A stretch of DNA of 64,000 nt from Selaginella moellendorffii (lineage: Eukaryota > Plantae > Lycopodiophyta), in the NCBI RefSeq assembly GCF_000143415.4, contig NW_003314342.1, forward strand, positions 519,569 through 583,568, given 5' to 3'. Within the stretch, counting starts at the first letter, position 1; every line of letters starts with the position of its first letter. The notes below the pieces were generated by a model. That model was not told where the DNA came from. It made no database searches and saw nothing but the letters and a program-made list of their open reading frames with translations. The position numbers and the translations under genes were made by a program. Below, piece by piece: positions 14,176-56,347 of the stretch.

Positions 14176-14209
14176 TGTGAGTGCATGGAATATGGAACAG
14201 GCCCTCACA
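14176..14209. mobile_element. 34-bp TG...CA LTR remnant with ACAC TSD
   Basis: Absent from copies A and C; TGTGAG/CTCACA terminal inverted repeat; ACAC at 14172-14175 and 14210-14213; ends GGCCCTCACA like the LTR ending at 23336. Confidence 0.7.
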
Positions 14210-14478
14210 ACACCAAACTTAAAGTCCTTAAGAAACTGGAGTAAAACATTATTAATTTGTTTTATGCTTGAAGACTATTTATGGCATTTTTATTTTAAAG
14301 GAAAATTCAAAGTAAGAATTTCCAGTATGACTTTAAACTCTTTATTAATTAATATTCAGAAAGACATTTTATATAATGGTAACTTAGAATTTTAAAATTT
14401 TATTATTTACACAATATATAAATTGAAATATAGTTTTATTAACTACTACCTAGATAGAAAACAGAGAACTCAAGAATT

Positions 14479-15438: not shown

Positions 15439-15473
<35 letters not shown>

Positions 15474-16692: not shown

Positions 16693-17785
16693 CCGACCAA
16701 ACAAGTCACCTTATGGAGCGCCAGTCCTCTTTATTATGAAAAAGGATGGAACCATAAGGATGTGTATTGATTATTAGGCACTCAACAAGATCACGGTCAA
16801 AAATAGTTATCTTTTGCATTGCATTATTTGTTTGACCAACTCTTAAAGGTTAAGTATTTTACACAACTTGATTTGTGGTCCAGGTATCATTAGATATAGG
16901 CAACAGATCAGAATGTGGAGAAAACAGTTTTTAAGACTTGGTACGGATCTTATGAGTTCCTTGTCATGTCGTTTGGGTTATGCAATGCTCTAGCAATATT
17001 AATCACAATGATGGATAGAATATTTAGAGATTATTTATACATATTTGTTCCCTTATATATTGACAATATTCTAGTCTTCAGTGAAATGTTGGAGGATCAT
17101 TTAAAACACTTAGAGCTGATATTTCAGAAGTTGCGTGAACACAAATTGTATGCTAAGGAAAGTAAATGTGCTTTTGGACAATTGCACATGAATTTTCTTG
17201 GGCATATATTGGTGGTGGCATAATTGAGGTGGACCCAAAGAGGGTGGAAGTGGTGAAGTTCTAGCAAGTCCCGACCACTATATCAGATGTTTGTTCTTTT
17301 CTCGGTTTGGCAAGATACTATCACAAGTTTGTCTGCAATTTTGCAAGAATTACTCTTCCATTGACTGAGTTAATGAAAAGTAATATATTGTTTCACTGGA
17401 CACTAGCTTGTCAACATGCTTTTGTATGGATGAAGGAGATCTTGACTATGGTTCCTATTCTCAAGATCCTAGACCTCAATAAACCCTTTTGAAGTGCATT
17501 ATGATGCATCTGGCTATGTTATAGATGTTGTGTTACAACAAAATTGTGATAATGCGATTGGTGTTATGCTAAGGCAACACAGTTGTCCCATTGCGTTTTA
17601 CTCCAAGAAATTGAATGAAACCTAACGAAGATGGCTAACGCACAAAAAAAAAATGTTTGTTATAGTGTTGGCATTAGAACATTGAAGACACTATTTGGGT
17701 GAACATACAAAGGTTTATACAGATAATAACACACTGAACTATTTTGCTATGCAGCCAAAGCTTATGTTGAAGCAGTGTCCTAGAG
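16693..17785 (+). mobile_element. Degenerate gypsy RT/RNase H fragment
   Basis: [28 protein letters not shown], RNase H DAS-like motif; many stops. Confidence 0.9.
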
Positions 17786-23336: not shown

Positions 23337-23369
23337 CACACACACACACACACACACAGATATATATAT

Positions 23370-33923: not shown

Positions 33924-34463
33924 ATGGAACCCTCCCACATTGTCTTCTTTCTTTCCTTCTTCTTCGCGGGATCACTCCTGGCAGTGGAAATCACTGCTCG
34001 CGAGGAATCTCTCGTTCACTTGCCGGATAACTTCAACAGGGATCGAACGATCGAGTTCTACCAGCACATCATCCGCGCAAATGGATCAACCTCCACTCTC
34101 AGCGAGACTCCCATCGGTGGCGGCACTCCGGGACGATTTGGCTACGCGGTCGTGTTTGATCACAAGTTGACGCAAGGGAGTGACTACTTCTCCAAGGAAG
34201 TTGGGAGGGTCCGTGGAGCCGCCGTGGTTTCTTCGCTGGATGGATCCCAAGCTCACGAAACTTTCACGGTGAGCTTGGCCGGGAGGAATGGTGCTTTGAG
34301 CTGCGCTGGAAGTTTTGAGCTTCGTCAACCCGTGACGAGAGTTCCAATTGTGGGTGGAACTGGAGAGTTTTACCGTATGGAGGGAGTTTATACGTCTCAA
34401 GTTGTTCATACCAGCGGAGCCAATGTTATTGCTCGTGTCCAGCTGACAATCCGTCGCGACTAA
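33924..34463 (+). CDS. DIR: Dirigent-like protein
   Basis: Signal peptide; FYQH, FG..VVFDHKLTQG, GRVRG, PIVGGTGEF motifs; TATATAAA at ~33853. Confidence 0.92.
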   Translation: MEPSHIVFFLSFFFAGSLLAVEITAREESLVHLPDNFNRDRTIEFYQHIIRANGSTSTLSETPIGGGTPGRFGYAVVFDHKLTQGSDYFSKEVGRVRGAAVVSSLDGSQAHETFTVSLAGRNGALSCAGSFELRQPVTRVPIVGGTGEFYRMEGVYTSQVVHTSGANVIARVQLTIRRD

Positions 34464-34514: not shown

Positions 34515-35293
34515 TTATGAAGTTCTTGGTGCCAGCCCAGGAAACCTTTCAAACAACCACGTAACAGCCCCTATTGCTTTCTGCGAGATCACGCTGATTG
34601 GTATACCATACTTCTGAGATATCATTCTTTACCAGAGCGAAACTGTTGATTTTAAACGCCGGCTCCACAATATCCCTCCCATAGCTGCAAGGTTCTTCCG
34701 AAATTCACACACTGCTGTGTCAACACGGTGATATCACTTACACAATCTTGTAATCTCCAGAGACATCTTCACAGCGATAGAAGCTGCACCCCTTGCTAAA
34801 CGGGAAAATATTCCCTCTCCAATCTGTTTAGAACAGCAAAACGTTCATAGTTCCTACATGCATCCCAAGATGAAATGGTTTGTATAGTCACCCAAATGCC
34901 AAGTTACTCCAACGCTCAAGTTGCCATCACTGATCTCGTCTATCACAAAACTCACCTCGGGACCAACGGAACTGGTAAATGTCTCGAACAATTCGATGAT
35001 AGCCTGCTTGCTCACATTGAAGAGACAATTCATCAAACCATTTGGAAGGAAAAGTTCTAGCAGAGCACCTTTCTACCAACGAATGGCTTGGAGAACACAA
35101 GATCTTCGTAGACACAGTCGCTAGCAATCAAATCACCGGCGATTTCTAGCTGCCTGTGATTGATCGCGCTGTAAAACTGTCTAACAGTGTCTTTGGCAGC
35201 GCCCAGCCGCCCGCAATGTAGAGAGCTCCTGCTATACCGTATCGATCTGCGAATGCAGCTGGACAGAGGAGCAATTGCCACGCCCCAATCCAT
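34515..35293 (-). CDS. NTF2/SnoaL-like domain protein, probably plastid-targeted, about 5 exons
   Basis: VRQFYSAIN...DCVYEDLVFSKPFVGRK, VGVTWHL, FPFSKGCSFY, YGRDIVEP across short introns. Confidence 0.85.
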
Positions 35294-35650
35294 GGATCCT
35301 CTTTTTTGCAACTTATCCTTAAAGATTTATGGTTAATAAACTATTTACAGTCATAATTTACTTTAAATCAACTGCACTTAGAAGTGTTCCATTTACTAAT
35401 AGATATTGGTTTTCGATCATTGCCAATTTTTTATTATTATTAAATTGCCATTAATGCTTGCAAATCAATATATATATTCCTTACAAATTACCTTTAATAT
35501 GTCTTCATAAAGACTATTCATTTTAAGATTTCTACATAGAAGACCATCACAATTCTATATAAAGTTTAAATTAATATAGAAAAGCAAGCTTAACATTAAA
35601 AATAAATTGCTGCGCGTTGCGTTGCAGCAACGCTTGGTTTGCTTTTGTTT

Positions 35651-38600
35651 TTAAATATTTTTTATTATGATATATAATTTGTTATGATCTGTCCAATATG
35701 CAGGTGCTATTCCTGCTTTTGTATATATTATATCTTTTATCCATATATGATCTATTAATTTATTATTACGTGTATTGTGTTTTATTATTTGTATATATCC
35801 TTCTTTCTCCATTATTGTTTGAAGTGGTTTTACTTCTTCTATTTGGTAGTCAATATTAAAATCTCCTGTAATTATTACTGGTTTTTTATTATCTATTTTC
35901 TGTATATATTTTTGTAGTTGTTTTATGAATATATGTATATTTGTTCCAGGTTTTCTATGTAAATTTATTATCTGTAATTGTTTTTTATTTTTTTCTAGTG
36001 ATACATATGACATTGCCATTGTTTCTGTTTTTAAATGTTCTACTATTTCTGATTTGTAGTCATTTGTATGCAATATTGCTATATGTGGGGGTTGTTCATG
36101 TATATATGATTTATATTTATTAAAATATAAATCCTCATGTTTTTGTGTTCTTACTTCTTGCATACATATTATATCTGATGTTAATAATTGTGAATCACTC
36201 TTTATATCTTCGTGATGTGCAGTAATAGATCTTGTATTTAGAACTTGTATAATTGTTTGGTTAGCTGTTTTTTCTTCTTGTAAATCTATTAGATCAATTT
36301 GCCATGGTGCTTCTGTTGTCATTCTTATTATTTCTTTAGCTGCATCTTTATTGATTTTAATATGTTTATGTTCAATTGGTCTATATAAATGTATCCCTTT
36401 TAATGTTTGTGCTCTTGATAATGCAATATATGCTTGTCCTGGATATTTTGTTTTATATGGGTCATATCCTAATTGCATAACTGTTGATCCTTGTGCTCTA
36501 TGTATTGTTCTTCCTGCGCACGGTTGTACTGGAAATTGGGTTCTACTTATAACATAGTTTTTATTTTTAGTAATATTTATTGTTCTTGTTATTTTTTTTA
36601 TTGGTGTCCAGTTTTTTTCATTATTTTGCTTTATTGTTATGTTTTCTTTAGCTCTTGTTTTTTCACCTGTTTTTATATTTGGGTATTCTATCCACATTAT
36701 TTGTTCTTCTTCAATCTGGGTTACATCTTGTAATACTCCATCTGCTCCATTTACTAATCCATCTTCTGTTGCTATATTTTGTGTTATTTCAATTGCCATT
36801 TTCTTTTTCAAATGTAATATTTTATGTAGTCCTTGTGTTTTTCTTGTGTCATCTGGCAGCGAAAAATGTGTAGGACAGGAATTTCCATGTTTGTCTTGTG
36901 CTTCTATAATTATATCTTTACCTTGTATGTGTTGTATTATTTTTTCATTATGTTCTCTTACTTGTTCATTAGTTGCAAATATAGAATAGTATTCTGTGTT
37001 ATATGTATCTGTAATGACTTGTTTATTTATATATTCTAGCTCTTTATCTGTTTGTTCTCCTATTTTTATTTTATTTAAAGCTTTTATAAAGATTATATCA
37101 TCTTTTTGCCTCATTATTTCAGTAAGTTCATAGATTTTAAAATTATTTTTCCATGGGTGGTGTATGGAGACATCATTTTCAGGTCTATATGTTTTTGTTG
37201 AATAAATTGGTGTTTCAAATGTAGGATTTAATTGATAGAAATCACCTGTAAATATACAATCCATCCCACCAAAGTCTATTCCATATGTTGTTTTGAAGCT
37301 TTCACATCTTCTATTTATATCTTGTAGCATTTCTATACTTACCATTGATATTTCATCTATTACTAAACATTTTATTGTTGAAAACTTTCTTTTATATTTA
37401 TCTAATGTGTCATTTGTTAATATTGTTTGACATTGTTTTGATGCTTCTGGTCGAAATGCAAAAGCTGAATGTATTGTTGAACCATTTATATTACAAGATG
37501 CTTTTCCTGTAGGTGCTGTTATTAATATTGTTTGTCCTGGTTCATTATTTATATCTTGGTTTGTTTTATAATATCGTTTGAGTGTTTCTATAAGTGTATT
37601 TAAAAGCATTGATTTTCCAATTCCTGCTCCTCCTGTTAAAAATAAGCACAATTGTTTGTTAGGTTGTTTTATTTTTTTCAATATGAAGTCATCATGTATT
37701 ATTCTTTGCTTTTTATTAAGNNNNNNNNNNNNNNNNNNNNNNNNNNNNNNNNNNNNNNNNNNNNNNNNNNNNNNNNNNNNNNNNNNNNNNNNNNNNNNNN
37801 NNNNNNNNNNNNNNNNNNNNNNNNNNNNNNNNNNNNNNNNNNNNNNNNNNNNNNNNNNNNNNNNNNNNNNNNNNNNNNNNNNNNNNNNNNNNNNNNNNNN
37901 NNNNNNNNNNNNNNNNNNNNNNNNNNNNNNNNNNNNNNNNNNNNNNNNNNNNNNNNNNNNNNNNNNNNNNNNNNNNNNNNNNNNNNNNNNNNNNNNNNNN
38001 NNNNNNNNNNNNNNNNNNNNNNNNNNNNNNNNNNNNNNNNNNNNNNNNNNNNNNNNNNNNNNNNNNNNNNNNNNNNNNNNNNNNNNNNNNNNNNNNNNNN
38101 NNNNNNNNNNNNNNNNNNNNNNNNNNNNNNNNNNNNNNNNNNNNNNNNNNNNNNNNNNNNNNNNNNNNNNNNNNNNNNNNNNNNNNNNNNNNNNNNNNNN
38201 NNNNNNNNNNNNNNNNNNNNNNNNNNNNNNNNNNNNNNNNNNNNNNNNNNNNNNNNNNNNNNNNNNNNNNNNNNNNNNNNNNNNNNNNNNTCATTTATTT
38301 GTTCCATATTTGCTTCATATGCATTCATGTATGTTGTGTACATTTCTTTAAGATCTTCTTCTTTTCTAAATTTTTTATGTAAGATTAATCTTTCAAATGC
38401 CCACTTTTCTGAATCTTTTTCTTTACTAAAGTTTATATATCTAATTATATTGTTTTTTTTATGTTTTCGTGTTGTTACTTCTTTTTCAAATATATATTCA
38501 GTTGTTATCTCTACTAATGTTAAATCTTCTAATTTTTCTGGTCTTTGCATGTATTTTTCAATTAGTCCAGGTACTGTTATGTCTGTTTCGTCTTCTTGCA

Positions 38601-41369
38601 TTTTTGCAAGGTCTTGTTTCATTTTTAAACGCTTTGTTCGTTGTTCTTGTGGTTTAGTATCAATGAACTTTACAGTTCTAGACATATGATGAAATGGGAT
38701 TGACAATATTAAAAAAAGTGCTTGTTGAATTGGCATTTCCCTACCACGTATGAAGCTATTTTCTAATAACCGAACTCTATTAAATGCATCTGTTCCTTCT
38801 TCTTGGCATTTTTTAAATACAGTTGATAATGTCTTTGTTATTTCTGTTTCAATACATGCAATGTATGATAAACAATATAATGCTGCTGCATATGGATCAA
38901 GAATAATTTGTATATCTACATTTGATTGCCACAGATTTGATAATTTGTTATTAAAAGTATTTGTGTTTATGTCTTTTGGTTTTCGTTTATAAAAAATTTT
39001 TGTATTTGTTATTGTCGATCTTATTGTAGCTTTATATTGCTCATATGTTATTCCTATTATTTTTAAATATTCATCAAACTCTAAATCTTTTAGATCTATA
39101 GTTTTATCTTCTAGTATTGTTTTTATTTTTTTTAAAATTATTGTATATGAATCCTTTTCATGTTTTGTAATGTCTTTTATAGGCTCTAAGATTTTTGTTT
39201 GTGGCATTGGAGGAATTGGGTAATTAAATCTACAATTTATATTTTTATATTTTTTACATGTTTTTCTATGTTTATGAGTTTGAACATCGTTTATATTATC
39301 TGGTAGTTTTTCTGAATCAGTACATATAATTTCATTAGCATATTCTTTTATTTGTTCTAATGTTTGTGGTGGATTTTCTAACCATATTAGTGCATGTTCA
39401 TGTGGTGTACCACGTTGTTGAAATTGTGTTACAAATATATAGTCTTTTACTTTCCTTCCAAATATGTGATAATTGGACATTAATATTTTTCTAAATGCTG
39501 ATGTTTTATGTGCATAATATCGTATTGTGCTGATTGGATCAGCTCTTAGTATTTTATATATTTTCTCTTTTTCATTTAAATTTTCTATCTCTTGTTTTTG
39601 TAATATATCTGTATTTAAATGTTTTAAAGCATTTATTAATGGTTCCCAATGTCTTTCTGAACAACTAAGAGTTAAAAATAGTGTTGGTGGTCCTAATTGT
39701 CTTATCATGGCAAATGCATCTTTTTTTAGTGCTTCTAAATTATCTGGTGATGTTCTTAGATTTTTTAAATCTCTAAACCCTATGTTTGAATTTAATATTT
39801 TATCCATATTTCCATTTACAAGCACATCTTTTGATGTGATTTTTCTTCCTTCATAAGTAAATTTTCTTAATCTAAAACCTGCATTTTGATTAACAAATTT
39901 GATTTCAGTTTTTACTGCTGCTGTAAATATATGTTCAATATGTCGTGCAAATTTTCTATCCTCATTCATTAATTCCCATTGGATTATTTCTTGATATGTA
40001 AATTTATTTTTTATGTCTAATGGTCTTGGTTTTCCACCAAATAGTTTTGGATATGCCATTTCTTCAGCATTTTCATCTACAAATAATCCTAATGGGTGTT
40101 GTCCTTGACTAGGTGCTATAACTAAAACTTTATTTGTAAAATTATCTATTTGATTTGCATTCTGTCAAGCCTATGACCATCAGTATCTGTTGGTGATATC
40201 TCACTATACAGGTTGTCTATAAGATTTACACTTTCATCATCTTCATTTAATTCTTGTTGTAATTCGTTTTCTAATATTATTTGTGCGTTATTATCTATAT
40301 TATCTAAATTTTGTGCTTGTTGAAACCAGTTTTCATCTATATTAATTTTATTTTTCTTATATAGTTTGNNNNNNNNNNNNNNNNNNNNNNNNNNNNNNNN
40401 NNNNNNNNNNNNNNNNNNNNNNNNNNNNNNNNNNNNNNNNNNNNNNNNNNNNNNNNNNNNNNNNNNNNATTGTTTTATACTATTATAAATATAATGTGGT
40501 CTGGCTATTCCATATTTATAATAATATTTATCAGTTAATCTTCGTTTCAGCTGAATTGTTATTGTTTGTGTTTCTTCAAATGTTCTTGGTAGTTTATTAA
40601 TTATTGGTTTAATATTAGTTGGGACATTTATTATTCCTCCTTTTATGTGCTGCTGACATTGAGGTTGATTTAGTATTGTTATATTTGCAAATAAAATATG
40701 TAGAGCTATCATTTTCTCTTCAATATCATTTAGTTGTTCTGTATATTGATCAATTTGATTCAATCTTATTTTTTCTGGACTTTTATATTTTTCTTTATTT
40801 GTCATACATTGATTGCATGCATATTCTTGTTTTTTATTATATTTAAACCAAAGTCTTTTACATATTTTACATGGATGTATCGGTATATCCTGTATAGCTT
40901 CATTATACATTTGTAATGCTTTCATACTTTTTGGATTGTTTATGTCATATTCATTTTCTTGTTGTTCTTTCTCTTTTATTGTTTTTTTTTCTTTACTTTT
41001 AATATAATATACTCTTCTTTTAAGTTTTTCATCTGATATAGTACTCCCTGTTCTTTGTCGAAAAATATTTATTTTTTCATTTGTTTGTTTTTGTGAGTTC
41101 CAAGTTTCCATAAGTATTTTGTCTTCTTCTGTTGTATATTGGTTTTGTAAAGTACTTTCTTCATGTTTTTCTTTGGATATATTAATAGTTTTTATTTGCT
41201 CATTTTTATTCTTTCTTGATAAATAATAGTATCTAGAAACAATTTGTTTCTCAGTTAAATCAATATTATGGTTGAATTTTAGTTCTTTTGTTTTTTTTTT
41301 TGCAGATCCTTGAATTGATAACAATTTTGCATCTAGAAGTTCTGTCCATTCAAATTTTCTCTTTGTCAT
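35651..41369 (-). CDS. Rep/PIF1 helicase/AP endonuclease polyprotein, with a frame break at ~40150-40190 and two N gaps
   Basis: Rep motifs PTLFLTLS, FQQRGTPHEH, YCLSY; helicase GGAGIGKS, DEISM, GDFYQL, RQKDD, TIHRAQG; EEP/APE motifs NTRS, ICMQE, GDFN, IDHIW, TDH. Confidence 0.93.
37721..38290. other. Assembly gap (570 N); second gap at 40369-40468 (100 N)
   Basis: N runs. Confidence 1.
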
Positions 41370-41877
41370 AATTTTGCCCTTTATACTTAAATGCCCTTAT
41401 TGCCCTTGATGTCCTTACACCCACTAGATAGGTGGGTGCATCCAAATTAGTTTTTTCTATGATTGTTTAGCTGATCAAGATTGTTTAAAGAGATTCAACA
41501 ATCAAACCGAATGGACTATTTTTAGCCTACTTTCAGCAAGTATTAATTCTCTATCTTTCAATCAACAGCTTTGTGAAGGCTGATAATTGATAATCTAGAC
41601 CAGCAGAAACAATCAAAGACTTTTTACTTACTTCTCAATGTTATTCTGTTGAAAGCCATTTATGCCCTAAAGCTATATTAAGTCTTTATTTAAATGGGCC
41701 TAAAATGGGCTTATGAGAGAAATGTGAGCACAAGTACCAGACTCATGCATTCTTAGGTAATTGACTGCCTGCTCAATTGTATTGTTTTTAGATCTCTTTT
41801 GGGTTTAACGCCACTACCTCGCATGGATTCTTGGGTCTTGCCCAAGAATCCATGTGAAATGATTTTGATTGGACGTG

Positions 41878-42505
41878 CGAGGGTTGGCTGTGGAAAACCC
41901 TCACACGTCCAATGACAAGTCCCTGAAAAGTCAATGGACTCAAAGATGGTTTGAAGTAGTTTGTAACTTTCTTTCTCGTAGGACATTTTTTTATATACCT
42001 TGATGCAGGTTCTACTTGAAATGATTTTTTTTTCTCACTGTCAATAGAGCATCTTCAGGCTCTACTGACAGTGACAGCCCTGGAGGAGGTAGCCAAGTCC
42101 AAAGAAAGTTATTCAAAATGTCAAGTGAGATATCTTCGACTAGGCAGGATGATTCCACAAACAAGTAACATTGTTGTCACTATGGAGACTGGTATCTAGC
42201 ATGATGTTTTCAGTTTACAAGGTTGGGTGTGGAAAACCCTCGCACATCCAATGACAAGTCCCTGAAAAGTCGATGGACTTAAAGATGGTTTGAAGTAGTT
42301 TGTAACTTTCTTTCTCGTTAGGACATTTTTTTTATATACCTTGATGCAAGTTCTACTTGAAATGATTTCTTTTTTTCACTGTCAGTAGAGCATCTTCAGG
42401 CTCTACTGACAGTGACAGCTCTGGACAAGGTAGCCAAGTCCAAAGAAAGTTATTCAAAATGTCAAGTGAGATGTCTTGATGTAGATTCTACTTGAAATGA
42501 TTTCT
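41878..42505. repeat. Tandem duplication (~340-bp period) inside the Helentron
   Basis: Block beginning TGTGGAAAACCCTC...CCAATGACAAGTCCCTGAAAAG occurs at ~41890 and ~42228 and stays collinear for ~250 bp. Confidence 0.9.
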
Positions 42506-42866
42506 TTTGAGCTACTATAGGGTGAAGGAGAGCTCAACATTGCCAGAGATGGATATCGAGGGCCAAGAACCAAAACAAACCTTTGATGTATGTGTGCCTT
42601 CCCATTTAACTTTCTTCTAAGCTGTTTTGTTTTTCTTTTGTAAGTTATCCAGTAGGATCCAGTAAGAGCACGGTCATTCTCACATATTAGTTTTCTAATT
42701 GAATGTGCAATGCAATTAGCAACAATCTTGTGAGTCGTTGCCATGGGATTTCTAGTTTGTGTGCTTTGAAATCTAGAAATTGTTAAGAGAAGCATTGCAA
42801 GATTTCATGAATAGATATTTGTATTATAGAGAAAGCAATTGAAAAATAGACAAGAGACAATTGTAT

Positions 42867-44392
42867 CTATTTCTGGTTGTTGGCAATTTCCATAGCTAAA
42901 TTGTTTGGTGTCTCAAAATGGACAATAATATTTGCCTCATTCAATAGAAAGAATCCTGTTGGTTTTGAAAATAGATAAATAACAATCTTTTCTGGGGACT
43001 CCATAGCAAACTTGACCATAGACCCTTCATCCAAATTATAAATTTTATCCACCATTTTATCACGCACTGTAACTCTATATTCCATCATGTCATTTGATAT
43101 AATAGAACCAATTATTGTAGCTGATTTACGAGGGATGGAATGCCCTTTACATTTTGCGCAAACAACAAAACCATCTTCTCTCTGCTCTAACATTGTGAAA
43201 GAGCAAAATGAGCAAAGACTTTCAGCTTGAGTGAGACTCTGTCGGTTGTCAGGGATGAAATATCCACTAATCTGTATAATTGGAAGTTAGAGTTGAAAGT
43301 AGATGTAAATAATTTACATTACCTTGTCTTTAGAAGTGAGACCACGGTGTGTTTTATAAACTTCATTGAGCCTCTGAATTTCGTTTGAATCAACTAGTGG
43401 CAAAAATAAAGTACTTCCAAGTGTTGCTAAATCACCTGATGCACTCATGCTTTTCATAATATTAAAAAATAAAAAATTTGGCATATATCCAGCATATAAA
43501 TCTGCTACAATATGATGATATTGCTCTTCATGCTCCAGATGCATATAGAGCTGTGAAAATATCTTATAAATAGAAAATTAAATAGAAAAAAACATTACCA
43601 TAGTTACATCCAAAGGATTATCAGAAGAAGCAATCTTTATTTTAGGAAAAACACCAGTGTTGATTACAACAGCATGTATAGCTTGTGGATAAACTCTAGT
43701 AGCCATTAAAGATGATATAGAAGCTCCTTTAGTTGGCTGTAATCTTAATTTAACATCAAAATCATCTATAATTTGAATGATAGAAGAATCTGTAATATAA
43801 AGAACTTTTTCTGAAGTTCCATGGTGGTAAACTGGGTTTTTCTGTCGTTCAACCCATCTGCAGTGAGAGAATTATAATCTTGTTAATTTTTTTAAAAAAA
43901 ATTACAAACCTTGTAAGTGAGAAACATTTATCAACCATAAATTTATTATATAATCGTGCACACATGGATGAATCACCATATACAGTTAAAGTTTGCAAGC
44001 CATGCATATCTGTACAATCCATTATATAAGTTAAGTATTTTGCACTTCGCAGAGTGTTCTTTGCAAGATGAACTTTATAAGTTCCATACCTAGGCAAAAA
44101 GCAAATCAAAACTACAGAAAAAAAACGATTTCAAAACCATACGTAGATAAAACCTTCAGCTCAAGAATTTTGGTTGAATTTGCTTTTTCAAAGACAAGTG
44201 ATGCAATAGTGGCTTTTAGGATGGTCAACTTTGTCCTCTTTGCTTGTGAAACTACAAAACCAAAGAGAAATAAATCAAGAAATACTAAGGAATAAAGAGA
44301 AAAACCAAACCTTCATAAGAATTTGATTCTGTAGACAAATCCTCAGCTGGTGACGACTGAACAATATCCATAGCACAATCCAAATCTGACAT
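42867..44392 (-). CDS. RPA70-like ssDNA-binding protein carried by the Helentron, multi-exon
   Basis: Spliced exons give an OB-fold-like segment (MDCTDMHGLQTLTVYG..LYNKFMVDKCFSL) and a C-terminal C4 zinc finger CSFC..CAKC followed by ..YRVTVRDKMVDKI, as in RPA70 DBD-C. Confidence 0.7.
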
Positions 44393-45044
44393 ATCTATGT
44401 GATTGATTAAATAGAATTATCTCTAGTTAATTTATACTAGTAAAAAAATCCAAAAATAAACTAGACTTCACTTTGAAGAATCAAAAACATAAAAGAATAA
44501 AACTTTGAGCTAAAAATTAAAATCCGTCAACTTTTCCAAACTTAGGGTTACGGTAGACAATAAACCAATTCGGCAGCTTCTGAACCTTTTCAACCTTTTC
44601 GTGCACTGACTCTCCTCATTTGTAAACATCCTTGCCAGATACTTCTCATCATCAACCAAGCTGAAGCTAGAAGCAACTTGACTGTACTCCTCAGCTGCTA
44701 CAATCTCCCTCTATCGGTCGCTTTAGAAAAGAGGAATGAATAGGAATAGAAAGATTGTCCTCCACTGATCTTTGTTTTCTACCCACTGCCCACTCACATA
44801 ATAGGGAGCCATACAGAGGAAGATCTAAGCTCCATCCATAGATGCATTCCAGGTTGATTGATTGATTCTGGGCAATCAATCAGTACCACCATAGTGGGTT
44901 TCTGATCCTGGATTGTGGCTCTCAGCTCAAACCTCCAGGGAGAGCCAATTCTCAATCAATTCACTAGTCCAAATATGATTTTCTTGATGCTTCCTAGGGA
45001 CAAGAGCAATCCATTGGAGCCAGTGGACAATGCAGCGGCCGGGA

Positions 45045-45215
45045 ACAACGATAGCATCATGATTGATCTCGAGGGGGCACTACTCAAATCCCTGAGCTGG
45101 TTTCAATGCTTCATGCTTGTCACAATTGAGGCTGGGAGGCCTCTATGAGTGCTCCTCCTATTTTTCATTCTACCCTTTATGTGGATCACTGGCTGCTTCG
45201 TCCATCTTGGCTCTA
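45045..45215 (+). pseudogene. GPAT: Captured fragment of a GPAT (sn-2 glycerol-3-phosphate acyltransferase) N-terminal HAD-like region
   Basis: IDLEGALLKSLSWFQCFMLVTIEAGRPL*VLLLFFILPFMW matches the plant GPAT pattern DLDGTLL.S.S.FPYFMLVA.EAG..LR.L.LL..P; stop at 45146-45148. Confidence 0.75.
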
Positions 45216-48062
45216 AATTCTCTGCTTCATGGCAGATCCTGGATTGAGGGCCTTGGCAGTGGAACTTTGAGAGCTCCCTTGTAATTGCCATTATGGACAT
45301 GGAGCCTAACCAATGCACTATACATTATACAGTTTCTTTGGCTCATGCTCCAAAAACCACGTATGCTCATGATGATACAAAGTGGTTAGAAAAGTTTATA
45401 AATTATAAACATGTTTATAAATTATAAATATGAAATTAATCTAAATGAATAACCACCATTGGATGATAGAATATCCAAGAATATTCAAGCATATTCTAAG
45501 TATATTTATTACCATCTCAGTCCTCCTACAGGTTTGCTTAAGCAAACCAATAAAACTTATAAGTTTGACATTCTTTACTTAATGGAAAACCAGAATAAAA
45601 ATTAATGAACTTAAATTGAAATCAATGCCTCTCCAAATTTATAAATGATTTGCCAAAGTGAATTTAGGTTTGTGATATTTTATAATTATTTAGTATATTA
45701 TTATTATTTCTTTGTTTAACACTTAGTGTGCAATAATGTATACTAGATTTTTTTGTTTATTGTTAAAATAAATAAAATGAAAACTTATTAAACACAATAA
45801 AAACAATTTATTTCTACAATAATTTACTTCAATCACATAAAATCCTTAACATGGGGAGAAACATATGAATCCATTCATCTCACTCAAATGCTTTGAAATC
45901 TCTTGCATCTATTGTTTAGATCCATAATCTATAAAGAAAGTTAAAGATTATTCTCAAACCTGGCAAGGAGTGTTAAGCCAAACACTCCATCCCCCACTAT
46001 CTTTCTGAAACTCACGTAGTGAGATAGCGAAGAAATTACAATGCTAAAAAGCTAACACATCTAACTAAGTAACTAGGCAAATTGTGATTCTACCTTGCAT
46101 GTTCATCAATAAATTGTTTCTTTTTATATCCTTTTAATGAATTTATCATTGTTAATTATTTTTTAGATTGTTCAGGAAGAAGAAGGAAATACCAAATTTT
46201 TATGATCATTTCTTTATTACCTTGATAATATTAAAATAACAGCTATAGTGAAATAGTAATATTAAGATCAAGTTAAAATAGTGATTTTGGAGTTACTATA
46301 AACTAAGCATATATAGTAATTTCAATAATTGATTATTAACTTTATTTTTATATCATTTAATAGATTATATGAAAACTTACCAACAATATTCAATATATAA
46401 ACATTCAAGTATTATGTATTTGGGATTGGATATAAAAATTAAAATCTAAACTATTTATATTAATTATATAATACCTTCATATTATATTATGTTACACCCT
46501 ATCACTCTAGCTTCAGTTATCCTATTGCTCATGTATTTTGTAGTAAAAATCAAGTTTAAATAAAGATCATACATATCTTTCTCAGTAAATTTAGCAATAA
46601 ATAATAGTCTTTTTTTATTAAAAAAAACTATATTTTAAATCACTAACTGTTTATAAATGTAGAACTGTATTTCATTTACTTGTACTTAATGAGATTAGAT
46701 TTAATTTTTAAAAATTATATAAGAACATCATCTTACTTATGGAGGATGAGTATTCAATTTACTGAGAGCAGCTTGGACATAATGTTTTTATAATTTAAAA
46801 TTATAACTTATTTTTAGGTTATTAAAGCAATGATTATGTAATTGCGCATGCTTGCATTATATATTTACACATGTGTGGATTTATTTTTTTTATTTGTATA
46901 TAAAAGTACTATGTATGCAATCATATTTCAATTGCTATATAAGTAATCAAAATGTGATTATGTGCATAATATTTTTGTCAATAGGGTATGGCATGTTAGA
47001 TTGCTATTGCTATGCAAAACTAATGCCACATTATCTCAAATAATATAACGTAATTATAAAGTTAATAAAGTTTTATTTTATCTCTTTTTTATGTTGTTGA
47101 GCACAACTTTGTGATCTCTTGATTGTGATCATCTCTCTCCTCCTTTCCATACACTATATTCACCTCTCATTACTTTATTTTTTGTGACTTAAAAGCATAT
47201 TTCAATTATAACACACCCTAATGTAAGCACTATGCTTTGATTGCTTTTGCACTTGCAAAGCAAGTGCCTCTAATTTTTTGTAGCTTGTATGTAGTATAAC
47301 ACAATAATCTAGGTAACAATGAATTGATACAGAGGTGAGTGCAATCAAGTAAAGTATAAAAGAGAGCATAAAGTTATTTTTTGGGTGCTTGGGTGTTGAA
47401 TATGAAGGTTTTTCAACAAGTGGGTCATATTATAATTGTGGTTTTATCAATTTTTAGCATTTGTATTTTTTTGGTATTATAATGGTTTGTTATGCATAAG
47501 TATGTTGCAAAATAATAGTGTAAACTTTTTTTTCTTGGATTTTTTCTTCTTAGCTTGATTTTTGTAGTTGTTATAGCAATTGTGTTAGTGGAGCATTATA
47601 ACGTAACATTTATATATAAGTAAACGATAAATTTATGCTCATTTCTTTTTAATGCATTAATTGATTTTTTTCAATATTTGTTTTCATTCTAGATTATTTC
47701 TATGGCCAAGAAATTTAGATTTTTGCACCAATATAAATAACACACATATAATATATAGTTATACTGTAGCAATTTGCTAACTTGCTAAGCTTAAAAGTTT
47801 ATATTATATTGTTGATATAACCACAAGAGTGCCCCAAACATATAGTGATGGTAACTTTAGCTTGTGAAATTCAAAAATCATTCAAAATCTAGCTCACACT
47901 GAAGAACATCACACTCCCAAACCGTAATTCAAAAGTCTAAACTCTACTAACATATTATAAAATCCAATGTAAATAAAAATTTATGCAACACAAAAAATTA
48001 CATATATGCCACTAACTTAGACTTTGCCATGCAGTCCATGTGTAAGAAAAAAGTTGTGTTCA

Positions 48063-48151
48063 AAATAAAAATACATATGTGTTTGAATTATTGTAACATA
48101 TGAGTCACACATATATGTTACAATAATTCAAACACATATGTATTTTTATTT
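48063..48151. repeat. Perfect 39-bp inverted repeat with 11-nt loop
   Basis: 48063-48101 is the exact reverse complement of 48113-48151. Confidence 0.95.
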
Positions 48152-49388
48152 CATATATTTTATAAGCTTCTACAAATTTTTGCCAGACCACCTGAGAAGT
48201 ATACCTTCCCTAAATTTTTTGCCAGGTCACCTGGGAAGTGTTCCCCCAAAAAATACCATCACAAATTGCTTGCCATAGGTTATAAAACTTAAAATGATAT
48301 AATGTATCATATAAGATTATTAAATAAATAACTATAAAAACCATAAATAAGAAACTTTAATAGTCTAATATTTTAAGCTTTGTTTTAGCAGATTTTGTAA
48401 CAAGCATAAATGTATATAAACTTCCATAAACTTAAATCAAATTGATAATTTTGAAACAAACAAGACACATTTGAATCAGAAACTCCATGAGAAATACAAG
48501 GAGATTTTGATGAGAGCATTGCCTTCCCCAATAGCTACACAATGGACAATTCTAGTGGCATCAACTGGCTCAGTTCTCTTCAGCTGCTTTGAATGCTAAT
48601 CGATATGTTATCACAAGTTAACTGTGTTTTAGGCTATTACCCAGTTTTACTGCCGGCAGGGGTTCTTCTTGAGCAGAAGATAAAGATCATGCTGGCGAGA
48701 TTTAGATATTCCAACTTTCTGGATGATGCCTGGAGTAGAATTTACGCATGGAAAAAGAGAAAAAGAACAAATGGAATGTGCGGCATGGTTGGAGTCTTTC
48801 GCATTTCATGAAAACGACATCCCGCAAACCTTGACACACATTTTTAAGAGCGTCTCCCACTACCAAAGTGGAGAAGGGAATTTTTCCTAGACACCTCTAA
48901 ACCATGCAGCACAAGAAGAGCCAAGAGAATCCACGTCTGTATAAACTCGTATTCATTCTATTCTTTTGGCGTTTTAGATCTTGTTTTCAAGTTTAGAACG
49001 ACCACCTTTCCGGTGCCTCAATTCCATGATCTTTCATTGTTCTATTCTTTTTGTGCGTGTGTTGTAAAGCTGCAAGGAAAAGTCGATGCAAGGACGAAGT
49101 GATTTCTCTCTAGCTTTGTTTCTTGCTTTTGTTCTTGAAGGGACCGCTTTGCCTAGCTAGGATCTCTAATGGAACCAAGAACAAAAAGAAATGTGAGAGA
49201 AAGAGAGAAGGAAATAAAAAAGTTTAGCATATAGTAATAGACCTATGGCGAAAGCACCATCAAATCTTGCGTGATTTTAATCGACCGATAAATATTTCTA
49301 CCCCCAAAACAGTGAAACACTTGTGCCTTCCAAGCCACTCGCGGAAAAAGAAACAAGCAAAAAGGGAGAAAACAGAGGAATTTCGAGA

Positions 49389-50835
49389 ATGGAGAATGCC
49401 TTTGCAGTGATGGCGATTCTTGCGTCAGTCTTCTGGAGCACAGCGGTCTCCAAGTTCTACATCGAATCGTGCTCGGGCGAGGACAAGTGTAAATCGCTGC
49501 TGGGCTATCGAATTGTCGCCGACACGAGGATCTCAAACGTGGTGGCCATGTTTGGAGTCACCACCGATGAAATCCTGGGATCAAACAACTACGAGGTCGC
49601 GATTCCAGAGCCCGACGACGTGATCATCCAGGCGCAGGAGCTCCTCCGGATCCCAGTCTCGTGCGCTTGCTCCAATGGCATCCGGCGCACCGATTCCATC
49701 GTCTACTCTGTCCGCCAGGAAGGCGAGACGCTCTTCTCGATCTCCAATGAAGTCTTCGGAGGGATGGTCACTCCCTTGCAAATCTTCCAGGCCAACAGCA
49801 ACGATCCAGCCGGGGATTTGAGCGAGAGGGGGCTGAATTCCAGCACGGAGGTTGCGATTGGGAAGAGATTGATGATCCCCTTCCCCTGCGCTTGCAACGC
49901 GGGGAATTTCAAGGGGATCCCCGCGATGTTCGTGTCTTACATGGTCCAGAGAGGGGAATCCACGTTTGAGATCGCGAGCTTGTTTGATTCCAGCGTTTCC
50001 AGCGTCGTGGAGCTCAATGGGATGCAAAAGGGATCATCCCTCGCGGCTGGAGACGTGCTCGAAGTTCCAATCCCAGGCAAGTTTTTTGAGAATTCAATGA
50101 CCTCTCATCTTCCAAAAAAAACATGGAAAATCCAGCCTGTGAGTCATCCTTTGATTCGAGAGCTGTGGACTATGGATTGATGGTTCCAAACGGGACTTAT
50201 ACCATCACTGCCGATCGATGCGTCCAGTGTTCTTGCAACTATCCAAGGTAAAACCCATGATGAGATCTTGGATCATGGAAAGATCATCTATGTTTTTCCA
50301 GGCTAGATTGCACTCCTGCTCCATCCAGCTCCGGATGTCCATGCCCAGCTCCTCGCTGTGCCGGGAGCAATCTCAAAATTGGTGAATTCACCACCAAAGC
50401 TTCGCTCCAAGGCTGTCAAGTTACGTCTTGCTCGTACAATGGTTTCCACGACTCGGTCATCTTCGTTGGGTATATAAACCGTTCCTCTTTAAACATAGAT
50501 CTATAAACCTTGTAACTCTTCCATTTGCTCTTTCTTTCTCAGCTTGGAAAGCACGAATCAATCAACATGTCCTGGTAAGTTTCATGGTTTCGAGATCGTT
50601 GATAATCCTTTTTTTTTCTCTGGCAGTTTCATCACCACCTCCAACATACAGGCAGTACATGCCCGCCTTGACACCTGATTCATCGCCCATCATAGAACCG
50701 CAGAACATTATTTCGAACCAAGTCACGCCGATCAATGCTGGAACAGCTCAACAATCCTCTTCTTCGTTTTCCTCGTTTCATCACATCGAGAAGCTTTTGC
50801 TAGTACTCACATCTCTCACACTACTACTACTCTAG
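49389..50835 (+). CDS. LYM: LysM-domain GPI-anchored protein (LYM/CEBiP family), multi-exon
   Basis: Signal peptide; IESC..CKSLLGY, IPVSCAC, IPFPCAC, SYMVQRGE LysM motifs; VPNGTYTITADRCVQCSC; hydrophobic GPI-signal C-terminus. Confidence 0.92.
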
Positions 50836-51151: not shown

Positions 51152-52822
51152 TCAAGACGCAAAGATTAGATCGGCCAATCCCACGAACGCTGCCGAGTTA
51201 CTTGGATCGACCCCTTGCAAGAGCTGCGTGGCTGCTTGCCTTCCACAACTTGTATCAAAGTGGAGCCTCGACGCACCAAGGAGAGTTCCCAGCTCCGCGG
51301 CATTTGGAACGAACGAGAAACTCTCCACCATTTGCTGTGCTTGGTTGATCTTCCCGGCCCGGCCAAGTATGTCAATCACACAACAAAGCTGCTCTCTCGA
51401 CGGCTCTATTTCAAAGTCATCTCGCATCGACACAAACAGGTTCCAGCCTTCCTGGAGGAGTCCAATGTGGCTACACGCCGAGAGAACTGTTCTAACACAG
51501 CCCTTCTCGGGCTCCACTCCTTCCAAAACCATGAGCTTGAAGAGCTTGATAGAATCTTGGATATGGCCAAACTGTGCAAACGCAGCTATTATAGAGCTCC
51601 AGGCAATTTGGTCTCTCTCCTCCGGCATTGTGTAGAACAAGCTGGCTACCTCGCGCAGATGCCCGTTTTGGGCATATGACGAGAGCATAGAGCTCCATGC
51701 AACCACGTCCTTTTGAGGCATGCCAACAAAGACTAACTTAGCTTCTTCAAGGAGATCCTTTCTAACGTATGCTAGCATTAGAGCATTCCATGACAGAATG
51801 TTATGCTCTCTTGTTTTGACAAACACGTCCACTGCTTCTTCCAAATAGCCATGCCGGGCATAGAGATCCAGCATTGCGGTGGATGAAACTACGTTGTGCT
51901 CGGGCATCATATCAAACAAAGTCTTTGCTCGATCAAGGCTGTGGTGTGATCCTGTCATCAGGCTCGTGTATGAAGTCACGTCTCTCACCGGCATTTCTTC
52001 AAACAATCTCTCTGCCTCGTCGATATGCCCATTTCGGGCATAGGCTTGAAGAGCTGCGTTCCAAGTCACGAGGTCTCTCTCCGCCATCTCTTCAAATATC
52101 TCTTTTGCTTCTAACACTTTTCCAGCTTGACCATAGGCCGAAACCATCGTATTCCAAGTCACCACAGTTCTCACACTCATCCTGTCAAACAAATCTCTAG
52201 CTTTTTCTACGTATCCATTGATTGTGTATGACGAGAGCATCGCATTCCACGAGAAAACGTTTGAATCTGGCAAAGCACGAAAGATTCTTTCAGATTCGTC
52301 AATATGCCCAGACCGGGCATATGCAAGCATCATCGCGATTCCAGCTACAGAGTTTAGCTTCGGCATCCTTTTCAGAATATCGCTTCCTTCCATCAGAAAC
52401 CCTTCCTGAGCGTAAGCCGCCACCATTGCATTCCATGAAACTTCGGTGGGTTTTGATATTCTGTCAAAAACCCTCTTCGCTTTGTAGACATGCCCAGCTT
52501 GGGCATATGCTGTGATCATGATGTTAAACGATGCAACGTTTGGATTTGGGATTTTCTCAAAAACACTCTCTGCTTGATCCAAATTCCCATTCCTTGCGCA
52601 ATCCATTATGATTTTGTTCCACGAAACCACGCTGGGTTTTGAGACCTTTCGAGAGCTCTCCATCGTTTCACCCAATTGCCCGCCTTGGCAAAGTGAGCTC
52701 TCCGATTCCTTCCCGGGAAATTCCAAAATGCTCCCATTCCACTGCGTGGGCGATCCATCCGGTGCAAGGAAATCGCTGGGCTTGCGATAAATCCCACCAG
52801 ACGAAAGAGCTCTCTCCACCAT
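51152..52822 (-). CDS. PLS-class PPR protein rich in 31-aa S/SS motifs, E domain, no DYW
   Basis: Tandem VVSWN..AYA..G repeats; VLSACSHIG, DILGRAG and LLGASR E-domain motifs. Confidence 0.93.
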   Translation of the reverse strand: MVERALSSGGIYRKPSDFLAPDGSPTQWNGSILEFPGKESESSLCQGGQLGETMESSRKVSKPSVVSWNKIIMDCARNGNLDQAESVFEKIPNPNVASFNIMITAYAQAGHVYKAKRVFDRISKPTEVSWNAMVAAYAQEGFLMEGSDILKRMPKLNSVAGIAMMLAYARSGHIDESERIFRALPDSNVFSWNAMLSSYTINGYVEKARDLFDRMSVRTVVTWNTMVSAYGQAGKVLEAKEIFEEMAERDLVTWNAALQAYARNGHIDEAERLFEEMPVRDVTSYTSLMTGSHHSLDRAKTLFDMMPEHNVVSSTAMLDLYARHGYLEEAVDVFVKTREHNILSWNALMLAYVRKDLLEEAKLVFVGMPQKDVVAWSSMLSSYAQNGHLREVASLFYTMPEERDQIAWSSIIAAFAQFGHIQDSIKLFKLMVLEGVEPEKGCVRTVLSACSHIGLLQEGWNLFVSMRDDFEIEPSREQLCCVIDILGRAGKINQAQQMVESFSFVPNAAELGTLLGASRLHFDTSCGRQAATQLLQGVDPSNSAAFVGLADLIFAS

Positions 52823-52877
52823 CGCGGTCGTGGATCATCTTATCTTCTCCGGATTTCCCCTAAAAACAGAGCATGCC

Positions 52878-53621
52878 ATGGCGACTCTGTTCCACTCCCA
52901 CATTCCCACTCCAAGATCGCGAATTCTCAGGCGCAGGAGGCGCATTCTCTGTGAACTGGAAGAGCAGCAGCAGCAGCAATCCCCAAAGAAGCAAGATCCA
53001 GGCACCAAAATCCAGCTCGATTCCTCCACAGACTGGATCGCTTCGTCGCTGACAAGAAGATTTGGACTGGGGGCAGGCCTGGGATACGTGGGCTTCCTCG
53101 CATTCGGTGTAATCTCCGAGCAGATCAAAACGAGAACCGAGGTCGCCCTCGAGGAGCAAGGCTCCAGGTCAGAAATCCTCGCTTAGATTCGTCCTTTCGC
53201 TTAGATCTTGCGAGGTTCTTGCAGGGAAATCCAAGATGGAAAGGAGACCGTGCTTCCGAATGGAGTGAGGTTCACAGACCTGGTAATCGGAGGAGGGGCT
53301 TCTCCCAAGCGCGGGGATTTGGTGGTCGTGGATCTTGTGGGGAGAGTGACAAGCACTGGAGAGAAATTCGTTGACACGATCGGGAACAAGAGGCCACTGG
53401 TGTTCGTGTATGGCGCGAAGCCATACTCTGGTGGGATGTGCGATGGATTGGAGTTTGCGCTGGCATCGATGAACGCCGGTGGCGAGAGGAGGGTGATCGT
53501 GCCTCCTGCGCTAGGGTTTGGCGAACGAGGGGAAGATTTTGGAGCTCAAGGAAGAGTGGATCCAGACCAAGAGCTTGAATTCGTTGTCCAGCTTAGAAAG
53601 GTATCGATCTCACCCACATAG
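52878..53621 (+). CDS. FKBP17: Chloroplast FKBP-type PPIase (FKBP17-like), one intron
   Basis: Transit peptide; TDWIASSLTRRFGLGAGL; FKBP domain GGERRVIVPPALGFG; intron ~53168-53224. Confidence 0.9.
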
Positions 53622-53647
53622 ATCCTCGCAGGAACTCTAGAGAATGG

Positions 53648-56347
53648 ATGTTTCCATTCAACCGGAAGGGCATCTTGCTTTCTACTGGAAGGCTCATTCG
53701 CAGCGTGAATTTGCAAGCGAGCAACACATCCCTGGAGCAATCCATTCTTTCCCTGATCGCCCAAGAGCAGCAGCAAGCTCCTGATCCAGCAGAGTGCGCG
53801 CGATTGATCATCGCCTGCAAGAACGCCAAAGCCCACGAGCAAGGAAAATTCATCCATGGCTTCCTCGCACGGCACGGCCTCCTCCATCGCAATCCTATCC
53901 TCGCGGAGCTCCTGCTCGAGATGTACATTCGCTGTGGCAGCCTGGATGACGCCACCCAGACCTTCGATTCCATGCCGGAGAGAGATCTCAAGTCCTGGTC
54001 CAGGATGATCACCGCAAATGCCCAGAGTGGGAACTACACGCAGGCATTTGCGCTCTTCCAGAAACTCCACGTCCACGGTGTTCTTCCCAACCAGATCGCG
54101 CTGGTTGCCACCCTCAACTCCTGCCTCGCCGACCACCAGGTGAGATCCGTTCACGAGTGCGCTCGAGAGATCCACTGCGAGCACGAGAAGATCGTCGCGA
54201 CTGCGCTGCTCAACGCCTATGGCAAATGCGGCGACCTGAAGAGCGCTGGAGCGATCTTCCGCGGGATGGAGGAGCGAGACTTGATCTCCTGGACCGCGCT
54301 GATCACCGGATACGCCCAGTTTGGCCACTCCCGCCAAGCTCTGGACCTCTACCGGGAGATGCTCATGGACGGAGTCTCGCCGAGCAGGATCACTTTCCTC
54401 TCGCTCTTGAGCGCTTGCACGAAGCTGGGAAGCTTGCGAGAGGCCAGCCTCGTCCACGATCACATCCGGCAGAGTGGCAACCAGCAGGGGCTCTCGATCC
54501 AGAACGGGGTCGTGTGTATGTATCACCGCTGCGGCAGTGTCGAGAATGCCAAGCTGGTGTTCGATGCGATGCCTCGGCGAGACGTGATCTCGTGGACGTC
54601 GATGATCGCGGCCTATGCCCAGAGTGGTAGCTGTGACGATGCGATCAGGCTGTACAGGAGAATGGAGCTGGAAGGCGAGAAGCCAAACAAGGTGACGTTC
54701 CTCGCGGCTATGGAAGCTTGTGCGAAGTCTTTGGCTCCGGAAGAAGAAGCCGACGCTCTTCACAGGTGCGTGATCGAGAGCGGGCTGGAAACCGACGTTG
54801 TGGTGGCCACTGCACTCGTCAACATGTATGGAAAGTCTGCCAGAACGCTCGGAAGAGCTCAAGAGATCTTCGATGGAGTAGAGAAGCGGGACAACGTCGT
54901 GTGGAACGCACTGATTGCGGCCTACGCGCAGCACGGCTGCCGCGACCGCGCGCTGGATCTCCTGGAGCAAATGCAGCGCCAGAGTTTCTTTCCGGACAAG
55001 CCGGCCTTTGTGTCCGTCCTGAGCGCGCTCACTGGCTCGTCCTCGCTCGCGCTGGGACGTTCCATCCACGCCGCCATCGCCGACAAAGGCTTCGAGTCGG
55101 ACAGCATCGTCCGGAACGCGCTGATGAACATGTATGGCAAGTGTGGCTGCGCCGAGGACGCGCTCCGGCTGTTCGAGGCCTCGCCGAGGCTCCAAAACGT
55201 GATCTCCTGGAACACCGTAATAGCCGTGCACGCGCAGAACGGCGAGCACCAGCGATCCATGGTTCTCTTCCATCGAATGCAGCTCGCAGGAGTTTCAGCC
55301 GATCGAGCCACCTTGCTCACAGTTCTCTACGCATGCACGAATCCAGCAGCTCTTAGAACCGGGAGGCTTGTCCGCGAGGTCGCCACCCAGCGCGGCTACC
55401 ACCACGAAGTCAAGTTCCAGACCGCGCTCGTTCTCATGCACGCCAAGTGCGAAACTCTCGACGCCGCGGTGGAGGTGTTCGAGAGCATGCACCACCGAGA
55501 CACCCCCTCCTGGAACGCCATGGTCGCAGCGTATGGCTACCACGGTAACTGCGACCTCGCGCGGAGAACCTTCGACGACACCCCTGACAAGAACCTCGCG
55601 TCCTGGAACTCGATCATCGCAGCGTGTTCTCTCAACGGCCGCTGGAAAGAAAGCTTCAAGCTCTTGCAGCAAATGCAAGTTGATGGCGCCGTCCCGGACA
55701 CTGTCACGCTAGTCACAGTTCTCAGCTCCTGCGCTGCTGGAAGCGCCATCGCCAAAGGACGAGCCGTGCATAGATTCGCGGCCGAGAACGGGCTCATGTC
55801 CGACGTTGCGGTGGCGAACGGCGTCGTGGACTTTTACGGGAAGTGTGGATGCCTGCTCGAAGCTCGCGCGGTGCTGGACGAGATGGCCAAGCTCGACGAG
55901 GTGACATGGAACTCGCTGCTTGCCGGATATGCCCAGCACGGATATGGCGTGGAAACGCTCGAGGCCTTCACCGAGATGCAGCACCGGGGCTACTCCGCCA
56001 ACCGAATCACGTTCATGAGCGTCTTGCATGCATGCAGTCACGTCGGGCTCGTGGCCGAGGGCTGCAAGTATTTCAGCAGCATGATCGGCGACTATGGCTT
56101 CCAGCCGATTGAGGAGCACTGCGGCTGCATGATTGATCTGCTGGGACGAGCTGGGCACTTGAGTGAAGCCAAGACGCTGCTTGCGAGAATGCCGTTTAAG
56201 CCCAACCTGATTGCCTGGATGTCCCTGCTTGGCTCTTGCAAGGTTCATGGGAATCTAGAGCTGGGAAGGGACGCAGCGCTCAAAGTTTTGGAGTTCGACC
56301 CCGAGAATGCTGCGGCTCATATGCTTCTGTCCGAAATCGTCACCTAG
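53648..56347 (+). CDS. PLS-class PPR protein (899 aa) with E domain, no DYW
   Basis: P-L-S triplets; ACSHVG, DLLGRAG, WMSLLGSC motifs. Confidence 0.95.
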   Translation: MFPFNRKGILLSTGRLIRSVNLQASNTSLEQSILSLIAQEQQQAPDPAECARLIIACKNAKAHEQGKFIHGFLARHGLLHRNPILAELLLEMYIRCGSLDDATQTFDSMPERDLKSWSRMITANAQSGNYTQAFALFQKLHVHGVLPNQIALVATLNSCLADHQVRSVHECAREIHCEHEKIVATALLNAYGKCGDLKSAGAIFRGMEERDLISWTALITGYAQFGHSRQALDLYREMLMDGVSPSRITFLSLLSACTKLGSLREASLVHDHIRQSGNQQGLSIQNGVVCMYHRCGSVENAKLVFDAMPRRDVISWTSMIAAYAQSGSCDDAIRLYRRMELEGEKPNKVTFLAAMEACAKSLAPEEEADALHRCVIESGLETDVVVATALVNMYGKSARTLGRAQEIFDGVEKRDNVVWNALIAAYAQHGCRDRALDLLEQMQRQSFFPDKPAFVSVLSALTGSSSLALGRSIHAAIADKGFESDSIVRNALMNMYGKCGCAEDALRLFEASPRLQNVISWNTVIAVHAQNGEHQRSMVLFHRMQLAGVSADRATLLTVLYACTNPAALRTGRLVREVATQRGYHHEVKFQTALVLMHAKCETLDAAVEVFESMHHRDTPSWNAMVAAYGYHGNCDLARRTFDDTPDKNLASWNSIIAACSLNGRWKESFKLLQQMQVDGAVPDTVTLVTVLSSCAAGSAIAKGRAVHRFAAENGLMSDVAVANGVVDFYGKCGCLLEARAVLDEMAKLDEVTWNSLLAGYAQHGYGVETLEAFTEMQHRGYSANRITFMSVLHACSHVGLVAEGCKYFSSMIGDYGFQPIEEHCGCMIDLLGRAGHLSEAKTLLARMPFKPNLIAWMSLLGSCKVHGNLELGRDAALKVLEFDPENAAAHMLLSEIVT

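Follow-up and report, generated by a model that had tools for sequence, protein, structure and literature searches.

A probable Helentron-type rolling-circle transposon of a resident family in the lycophyte Selaginella moellendorffii

Organisation of the element

The window analysed here is a stretch of 64,000 nucleotides from Selaginella moellendorffii (assembly GCF_000143415.4, contig NW_003314342.1, positions 519,569 to 583,568 of the forward strand). Positions 35598-45555 of the window, read on the minus strand, very probably hold a copy of a Helentron-type (HLE2) rolling-circle transposon, from a family resident in this plant. From its proposed 5' end the copy contains an inverted repeat within a palindrome, an internal segment of host-like composition, a candidate accessory gene with introns, a transposase gene with a DUF6570 region, a Rep domain of the HUH-Y2 type, a Pif1-like helicase and a domain resembling apurinic/apyrimidinic (AP) endonucleases, and a second inverted repeat followed by a hairpin. 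With the sizes of two assembly gaps corrected, its length is ∼9.57 kb. The element is assigned to the Helentrons (HLE2) and not to the canonical Helitrons (HLE1) because of its domain order, the DUF6570 marker, the fused endonuclease, the structure of its ends and the similarity of its Rep domain.

The transposase

The coding part of the transposase consists of three stop-free pieces on the minus strand, 41369-40146, 40164-38291 and 37720-35654. The first (40146-41369) is the N-terminal part; it holds the second assembly gap and matches DUF6570 in Pfam with an E-value of 4.5e-7 and a score of 30.8 bits, at a cut-off of 24.3. The second (38291-40164) is the Rep domain, which matches Helitron_like_N with an E-value of 1.8e-21. 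Its HUH motif reads RGTPHEHAL, and the residue pairs H255/H257 and Y430/Y434 are kept. The third piece starts with the Pif1-like helicase (36311-37720; PIF1, E-value 1.2e-24), in which all motif residues are kept and positions at least 90% conserved among the relatives are either kept or conservatively changed. It continues in the same frame into a C-terminal EEP (AP-endonuclease-like) domain at 35654-36310, which is followed by the stop codon at 35651-35653.

The EEP domain scores under the Pfam cut-off. Among the closest Rep relatives, 79 have a complete helicase, and in 72 of these the C-terminal domain is homologous to it. It keeps all invariant residues of a 46-sequence alignment (N33, E60, G157, D158, N160 and D195) as well as H217, which is nearly invariant there. 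An AlphaFold model of the domain, with a predicted local distance difference test (pLDDT) score of 91, resembles Tdp2, the LINE-1 ORF2p endonuclease (TM 0.70-0.73) and the TRAS1 endonuclease.

Relatives of the Rep protein were sought among 1.84 billion representatives, and the best 150 were taken. These are 27-37% identical, and 101 of them also have the N-terminal region in common with the element. No protein of the family itself was found among 15 billion proteins, the best match being 37% identical; as no Selaginella protein stands among the best Rep matches, the family is evidently unannotated. Those relatives that carry a species name come from molluscs, a hemichordate and a beetle. At the loci of three relatives (L002-L004) end repeats were not detectable and a neighbouring gene for replication protein A (RPA) was not found. 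At one of these (L004:7794-9545, the locus of protein P0132, a distant relative in a eukaryote) an OTU-like open reading frame (ORF) lies immediately upstream of the Rep/helicase/endonuclease gene, an arrangement that has been described for animal Helentrons.

Assembly gaps and the frame break

Two gaps interrupt the transposase gene in the assembly. Gap 2 (40369-40468) lies in the N-terminal part, where contigs from three DNA sequencing runs of one sample link position 40366 to 40469 via 12 letters; the gap is therefore ∼10 nt and not 100 nt long, and the N-terminal ORF crosses it in frame, giving 377 stop-free residues. Gap 1 (37721-38290) was bridged by no contig of the runs examined. On either side of it, loose contig ends stay in open frame for 4-10 codons. 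Its counterpart in a paralog, L001, measures ∼272 nt (L001:11889-12160) and is decayed: it has several stops, and its frame is displaced by one nucleotide at a (GATT)3 run. One of the stops differs from the consensus of the loose ends by T in place of C. As read from this paralog, the missing piece would comprise ∼90 coding-like codons.

Between the N-terminal part and the Rep domain the reading frame is broken (40146-40167). The N-terminal frame stops at a TAG codon (40146-40148), and the Rep frame starts at 40167. In a subfamily that is ∼90% alike, 19 letters stand in place of the 21 found at 40161-40181 of the window, and the frame continues straight from the N-terminal part into the Rep domain. 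The ancestral protein was therefore a single ORF of roughly 1,780 residues, similar in size to the relatives (1,639-1,836 residues). The break may be a mutation or an assembly error. Because of it, this copy probably cannot make a full transposase; since both ends are kept, sister copies could mobilise it.

Structure of the ends

At the 3' end, an 11-nt subterminal inverted repeat (35634-35644, minus strand) starts 6 bp past the transposase stop codon. A GC-rich hairpin (35633-35606), whose stem measures 7 bp, comes next and is followed by TTTATTTTT. The T-rich 3' tail lies at 35598-35605. The flanks of other copies diverge at about position 35604. At the 5' end, the exact inverted partner of this repeat, TTGGTTTGCTT on the minus strand, is found at 45540-45550. 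Most of it is covered by a perfect 18-nt palindrome (45531-45548), and it is directly preceded by the proposed terminal letters TTTTA (45551-45555, minus strand). These two sites are the only exact copies of the 11-mer in the 64 kb. T-runs are present at both proposed ends, and neither a 5' TC nor a 3' CTRR end occurs there. A metagenome scan with the 20-nt 5' palindrome gave two chance matches in unrelated contigs.

The layout of the ends is that of canonical HLE2 elements, with short inverted repeats, the right one of which is followed by a 3' stem-loop (PMC11417382), as also described in PMC4067079. A preliminary description of this locus, made from its letters, had reported a Rep-helicase fused to an AP-endonuclease domain, RGTPH in place of the Helitron RGLPH, 11-bp repeats with a 5' palindrome, a 3' GC hairpin and T-runs, a stop codon only 6 bp from the repeat and the lack of TC and CTRR termini. 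All of these features were read again in the sequence, and the fused endonuclease gains from its shared frame, its kept residues and its model.

The accessory gene and internal region

Upstream of the transposase and on the same strand, stop-free segments between 44392 and 42870 resemble exons with GT/AG borders, in agreement with the spliced gene that had been proposed here, and are treated as a candidate accessory gene. One exon is 85% identical in amino acid sequence to SELMODRAFT_428853 of S. moellendorffii, and the final exon contains a C-x2-C-x13-C-x2-C pattern that is followed by predicted beta strands. Judged by the sequence of the paralog, the region is part of the element, because L001 joins window positions 43680-42502 to transposase sequence at 38670-37503.

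The preliminary description had also called this gene RPA70-like, an identity for which no profile, PDB or fold search provided support. The exons were searched separately, one at a time. None matched a family in Pfam or NCBIfam (Rep_fac-A_C and REPA_OB_2 included), nor a PDB entry by sequence or by a two-sequence profile; phmmer against 270 Helentron proteins and tblastn against the loci of the relatives likewise gave nothing. A single-sequence AlphaFold model of an accessory exon has a pLDDT of 50 and, in Foldseek and VIA-align, matches only generic beta folds. What speaks for RPA is the four-cysteine pattern and a weak lead from a language-model atlas, in which one exon scored 0.90 to a Rep_fac-A_C cluster; for a second exon the atlas gave only noise. 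By analogy, the product may bind single-stranded DNA.

Between the accessory gene and the transposase (41882-42477) a ∼340-bp unit is present twice. The two copies (41882-42136 and 42221-42477) are 94% alike, each contains a 40-nt palindrome, and they have 23-nt inverted repeats in common. The unit may represent a small repeat nested in the element, or the beginning of a tandem array carried by the Helentron. Between the accessory gene and the 5' end lies a segment of ∼840 bp (44520-45360, minus strand) with a host-like GC content of 40-45%, in which no coding sequence or RNA was recognised. On its side towards the 5' end lie 2.1 copies of a 19-bp unit (45394-45432), which contain a second perfect 18-nt palindrome (45403-45420).

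Copies of the family and base composition

Contigs of four runs were aligned to window positions 35300-41299. Three of these, independent and dated 2024, are the DNA runs of one sample, and they contain 468, 794 and 1695 matching contigs, about one third of which are at least 99% alike. Over 200 bp of flank the depth in the contigs drops to near zero, and at position 35604 the contigs have heterogeneous loose ends (agreement 0.6), so other copies stop within a few bases of 35598. Joints at 38314>38916, 38532>41157 and 36231>39537 mark internal deletions, as expected of non-autonomous derivatives. On the evidence of these contigs the family comprises hundreds of copies, and is young and recently active. 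A closing homology search for further copies found nothing. In a run with another organism label (X7), 23 contigs of the family cover 35666-41297 at low depth, four of which are at least 99% alike; they could stem from a different accession or a near relative, or from plant material in a mixed sample.

The paralog L001 is a 2.7-kb fragment in scaffold GL377673.1 of GCA_000143415.2, lying between GC-normal sequence. The two parts that it joins are 92-94% identical to the window. In L001:10635-11331, ∼700 nt separate two points between which the window has 25 nt (42704 and 42679), reflecting an insertion there or a deletion here.

The transposase part has a GC content of 24-29%, as compared to 45-55% in the neighbourhood. 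Polarised on this copy, and not on an ancestor, C>T plus G>A differences between copies occur at 84-98 places and the reverse at 49-63, in a sequence where only one base in four is G or C. The composition of ∼25% GC is thus most likely the result of strong pressure by C-to-T mutation on a repeat that is silenced and has long been resident in the genome, and not a sign of foreign origin.

These results bear on the earlier proposal of a young, structurally complete and possibly near-autonomous lineage. Its youth is borne out by the number and likeness of the copies, and its 3' end by the divergence of their flanks. Structural completeness and near-autonomy are both weakened by the frame break, the unread frame in gap 1 and two replaced Rep residues that are discussed below. 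The preliminary description had left both gaps to be closed and a frame break near 40170 to be rechecked. The break is real in the assembly and missing from the subfamily, and gap 2 is now closed and in frame, and for gap 1 the paralog supplies an estimate of the length.

Genomic setting

The window is plant nuclear DNA. On either side of the element there are genes of a plant context, encoding a dirigent protein (ORF at 33924-34463), a LysM receptor-like protein (49323-50180; a LysM receptor-like kinase gene) and pentatricopeptide repeat proteins (51152-56347), and a nodulin-like transporter is found among the flanking ORFs. No Rfam family or tRNA was detected in 35000-49000. The 64 kb contain no second copy of the element, and its flanks match no other repeat in the window, so that there is no local empty site.

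Further AT-rich islands, with 21-34% GC, lie among the GC-normal genes at 6000-9000, 14000-17000, 23000-26000 and 45556-49000. They have no sequence in common with the element, and may represent ancient repeats that have decayed while subject to the same drift towards AT. A long hairpin of 89 nt (48063-48151), 92% self-complementary, is found in AT-rich sequence on the right-hand side of the element.

Comparison with known elements

Helentrons that carry an RPA ORF have been described from the mite Metaseiulus occidentalis (Thomas, Vadnagara & Pritham 2014, PMC4067079), in a study that also ties the Drosophila DINE-1 repeats to the Helentron group. RPA homologs in Drosophila Helentrons are mentioned in passages of PMC4683698 that cite this work. 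The Selaginella element resembles the mite Helentrons in having a single ORF for Rep, helicase and AP endonuclease, a further ORF next to the transposase or upstream of it, and deletion derivatives. The ends are also alike: the subterminal inverted repeats are palindromic and lie within a few nucleotides of the 5' terminus and tens of nucleotides from the 3' terminus, a stem-loop is present on the 3' side, and the boundaries carry T-runs. In contrast, the repeat measures 11 nt here and 12-15 nt in the mite, and the accessory gene contains introns and is of unproven RPA identity, whereas the mite RPA ORF is intronless and has clear hits in CDD. From animal Helentrons in general the element differs in its lycophyte host and in a protein identity of ∼30-36%.

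The HELIANO survey of 404 genomes found HLE2 elements in 13 land-plant species and uses DUF6570 as the marker of HLE2 (Li et al. 2024, PMC11417382). The view that such a lineage is rarely described in land plants, as put forward in the preliminary description, is dated by this survey. HelenSM92 of Sphagnum shares the HLE2 structure, the DUF6570 marker and short terminal inverted repeats with the present element, but has a GIY-YIG domain. According to the same survey, the RPA domain is limited to HLE2 subgroup a, while the endonuclease (Exo_endo_phos) is enriched in subgroup b. In the searchable literature no description of a lycophyte Helentron was found; none of its papers brings Helentron or Helitron2 together with Selaginella, and of the papers listed for Helitrons in Selaginella none deals with the subject.

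With HLE1 elements such as Helraiser (PDB entry 7LCC) the element has in common an HUH-Y2 Rep, a Pif1-like helicase and the rolling-circle logic. HLE1 elements differ from it in their RGLPH motif, TC and CTRR ends, a hairpin ∼11 nt upstream and an A|T target, and they contain neither DUF6570 nor the endonuclease.

Weighing of the evidence

It is hardly credible that the element is a canonical Helitron that acquired an endonuclease domain, even though plants are rich in canonical Helitrons with RPA genes. The Helentron-like relatives score up to 344 bits against the Rep protein and Helraiser 30.9 bits, which, in terms of score, places the protein nearer to HLE2 than to HLE1. The HUH motif, RGTPH here, is RGSPH in 90% of the relatives and RGLPH in Helraiser; DUF6570 is present and TC and CTRR termini are absent. 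The Helentron identity given in the preliminary description is thus upheld. Contamination, or recent horizontal transfer from some animal or protist of high AT content, would account for 25% GC in a neighbourhood of 45-50%, for assembly gaps inside the element and for nearest named relatives that are all animals. It is nevertheless very improbable: those relatives are merely 27-37% identical, the independent 2024 DNA runs contain hundreds of diverged copies (90-100% alike), a decayed fragment lies in another scaffold with GC-normal sequence on both sides, and the mutation spectrum fits AT drift within the genome. There is a somewhat larger, still slim, chance that two neighbours have been taken for one element, namely a Helentron core (the transposase and the 3' end) with its true 5' end near 41400-41800, and, upstream, a block unrelated to it that would be a host gene, a captured gene or a different repeat, so that the palindrome at 45531-45548 would be a coincidence. 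The composition does change, from 25% GC in the transposase to 30-42% upstream, an inverted 11-mer match occurs by chance in 26% of Markov shuffles, and the contig alignment covered the 3' part of the element (35300-41299). An 11-mer match combined with a perfect palindrome of at least 16 nt at the site, however, arises in only 1 of 3000 shuffles, and the fusion in L001, at 92-94% identity, connects part of the upstream block to the transposase.

Besides the score-based placement of the Rep protein, several other observations weigh against a single Helentron with functional parts. The folding energy of the 3' hairpin is unremarkable (z -0.01), the proposed 5' boundary at 45555 is placed by structural features only, and a TT target is a proposal drawn from the T-runs at the ends. 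The junction of Rep and helicase spans gap 1, and in this copy its continuity is only predicted. The Rep domain departs from 142 relatives at two positions of 98% conservation, with E247Q (39424-39426) and K437C (38854-38856); judged from the alignment, the Rep protein of the family may be impaired, or may merely be divergent. None of the RNA runs searched contains element sequence. Even with these points, a single Helentron-type element of a resident family remains by far the most probable reading of the locus.

Proposed mechanism and implications

On the model of Helitrons and Helentrons, the HUH-Y2 Rep domain would nick one strand at the 5' end of the element, and the Pif1-like helicase would unwind the nicked strand in the 5' to 3' direction. 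The 3' inverted repeat and hairpin would signal the stop, after which a single-stranded or circular intermediate would integrate at T-rich sites, where the fused EEP nuclease might nick the target.

A more speculative extension, which we consider rather unlikely, is that the family is still active in the lycophyte through intact sister copies, and that the intron-bearing accessory gene encodes a highly diverged single-strand-binding protein, gained in an event separate from those that gave animal Helentrons and plant Helitrons their RPA genes. If true, an active family would offer a tractable plant model for Helentron transposition.

What is new is a well-documented Helentron from a lycophyte; the kind itself is already known, for a long time in animals and since 2024 in land plants, and general knowledge of rolling-circle transposons is unchanged by the element. 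The lycophyte record spans the domains, both proposed ends, the abundance of copies and the deletion derivatives. It also indicates that a resident repeat can hold 25% GC within a genome of 45-50% GC and yet retain long open frames.

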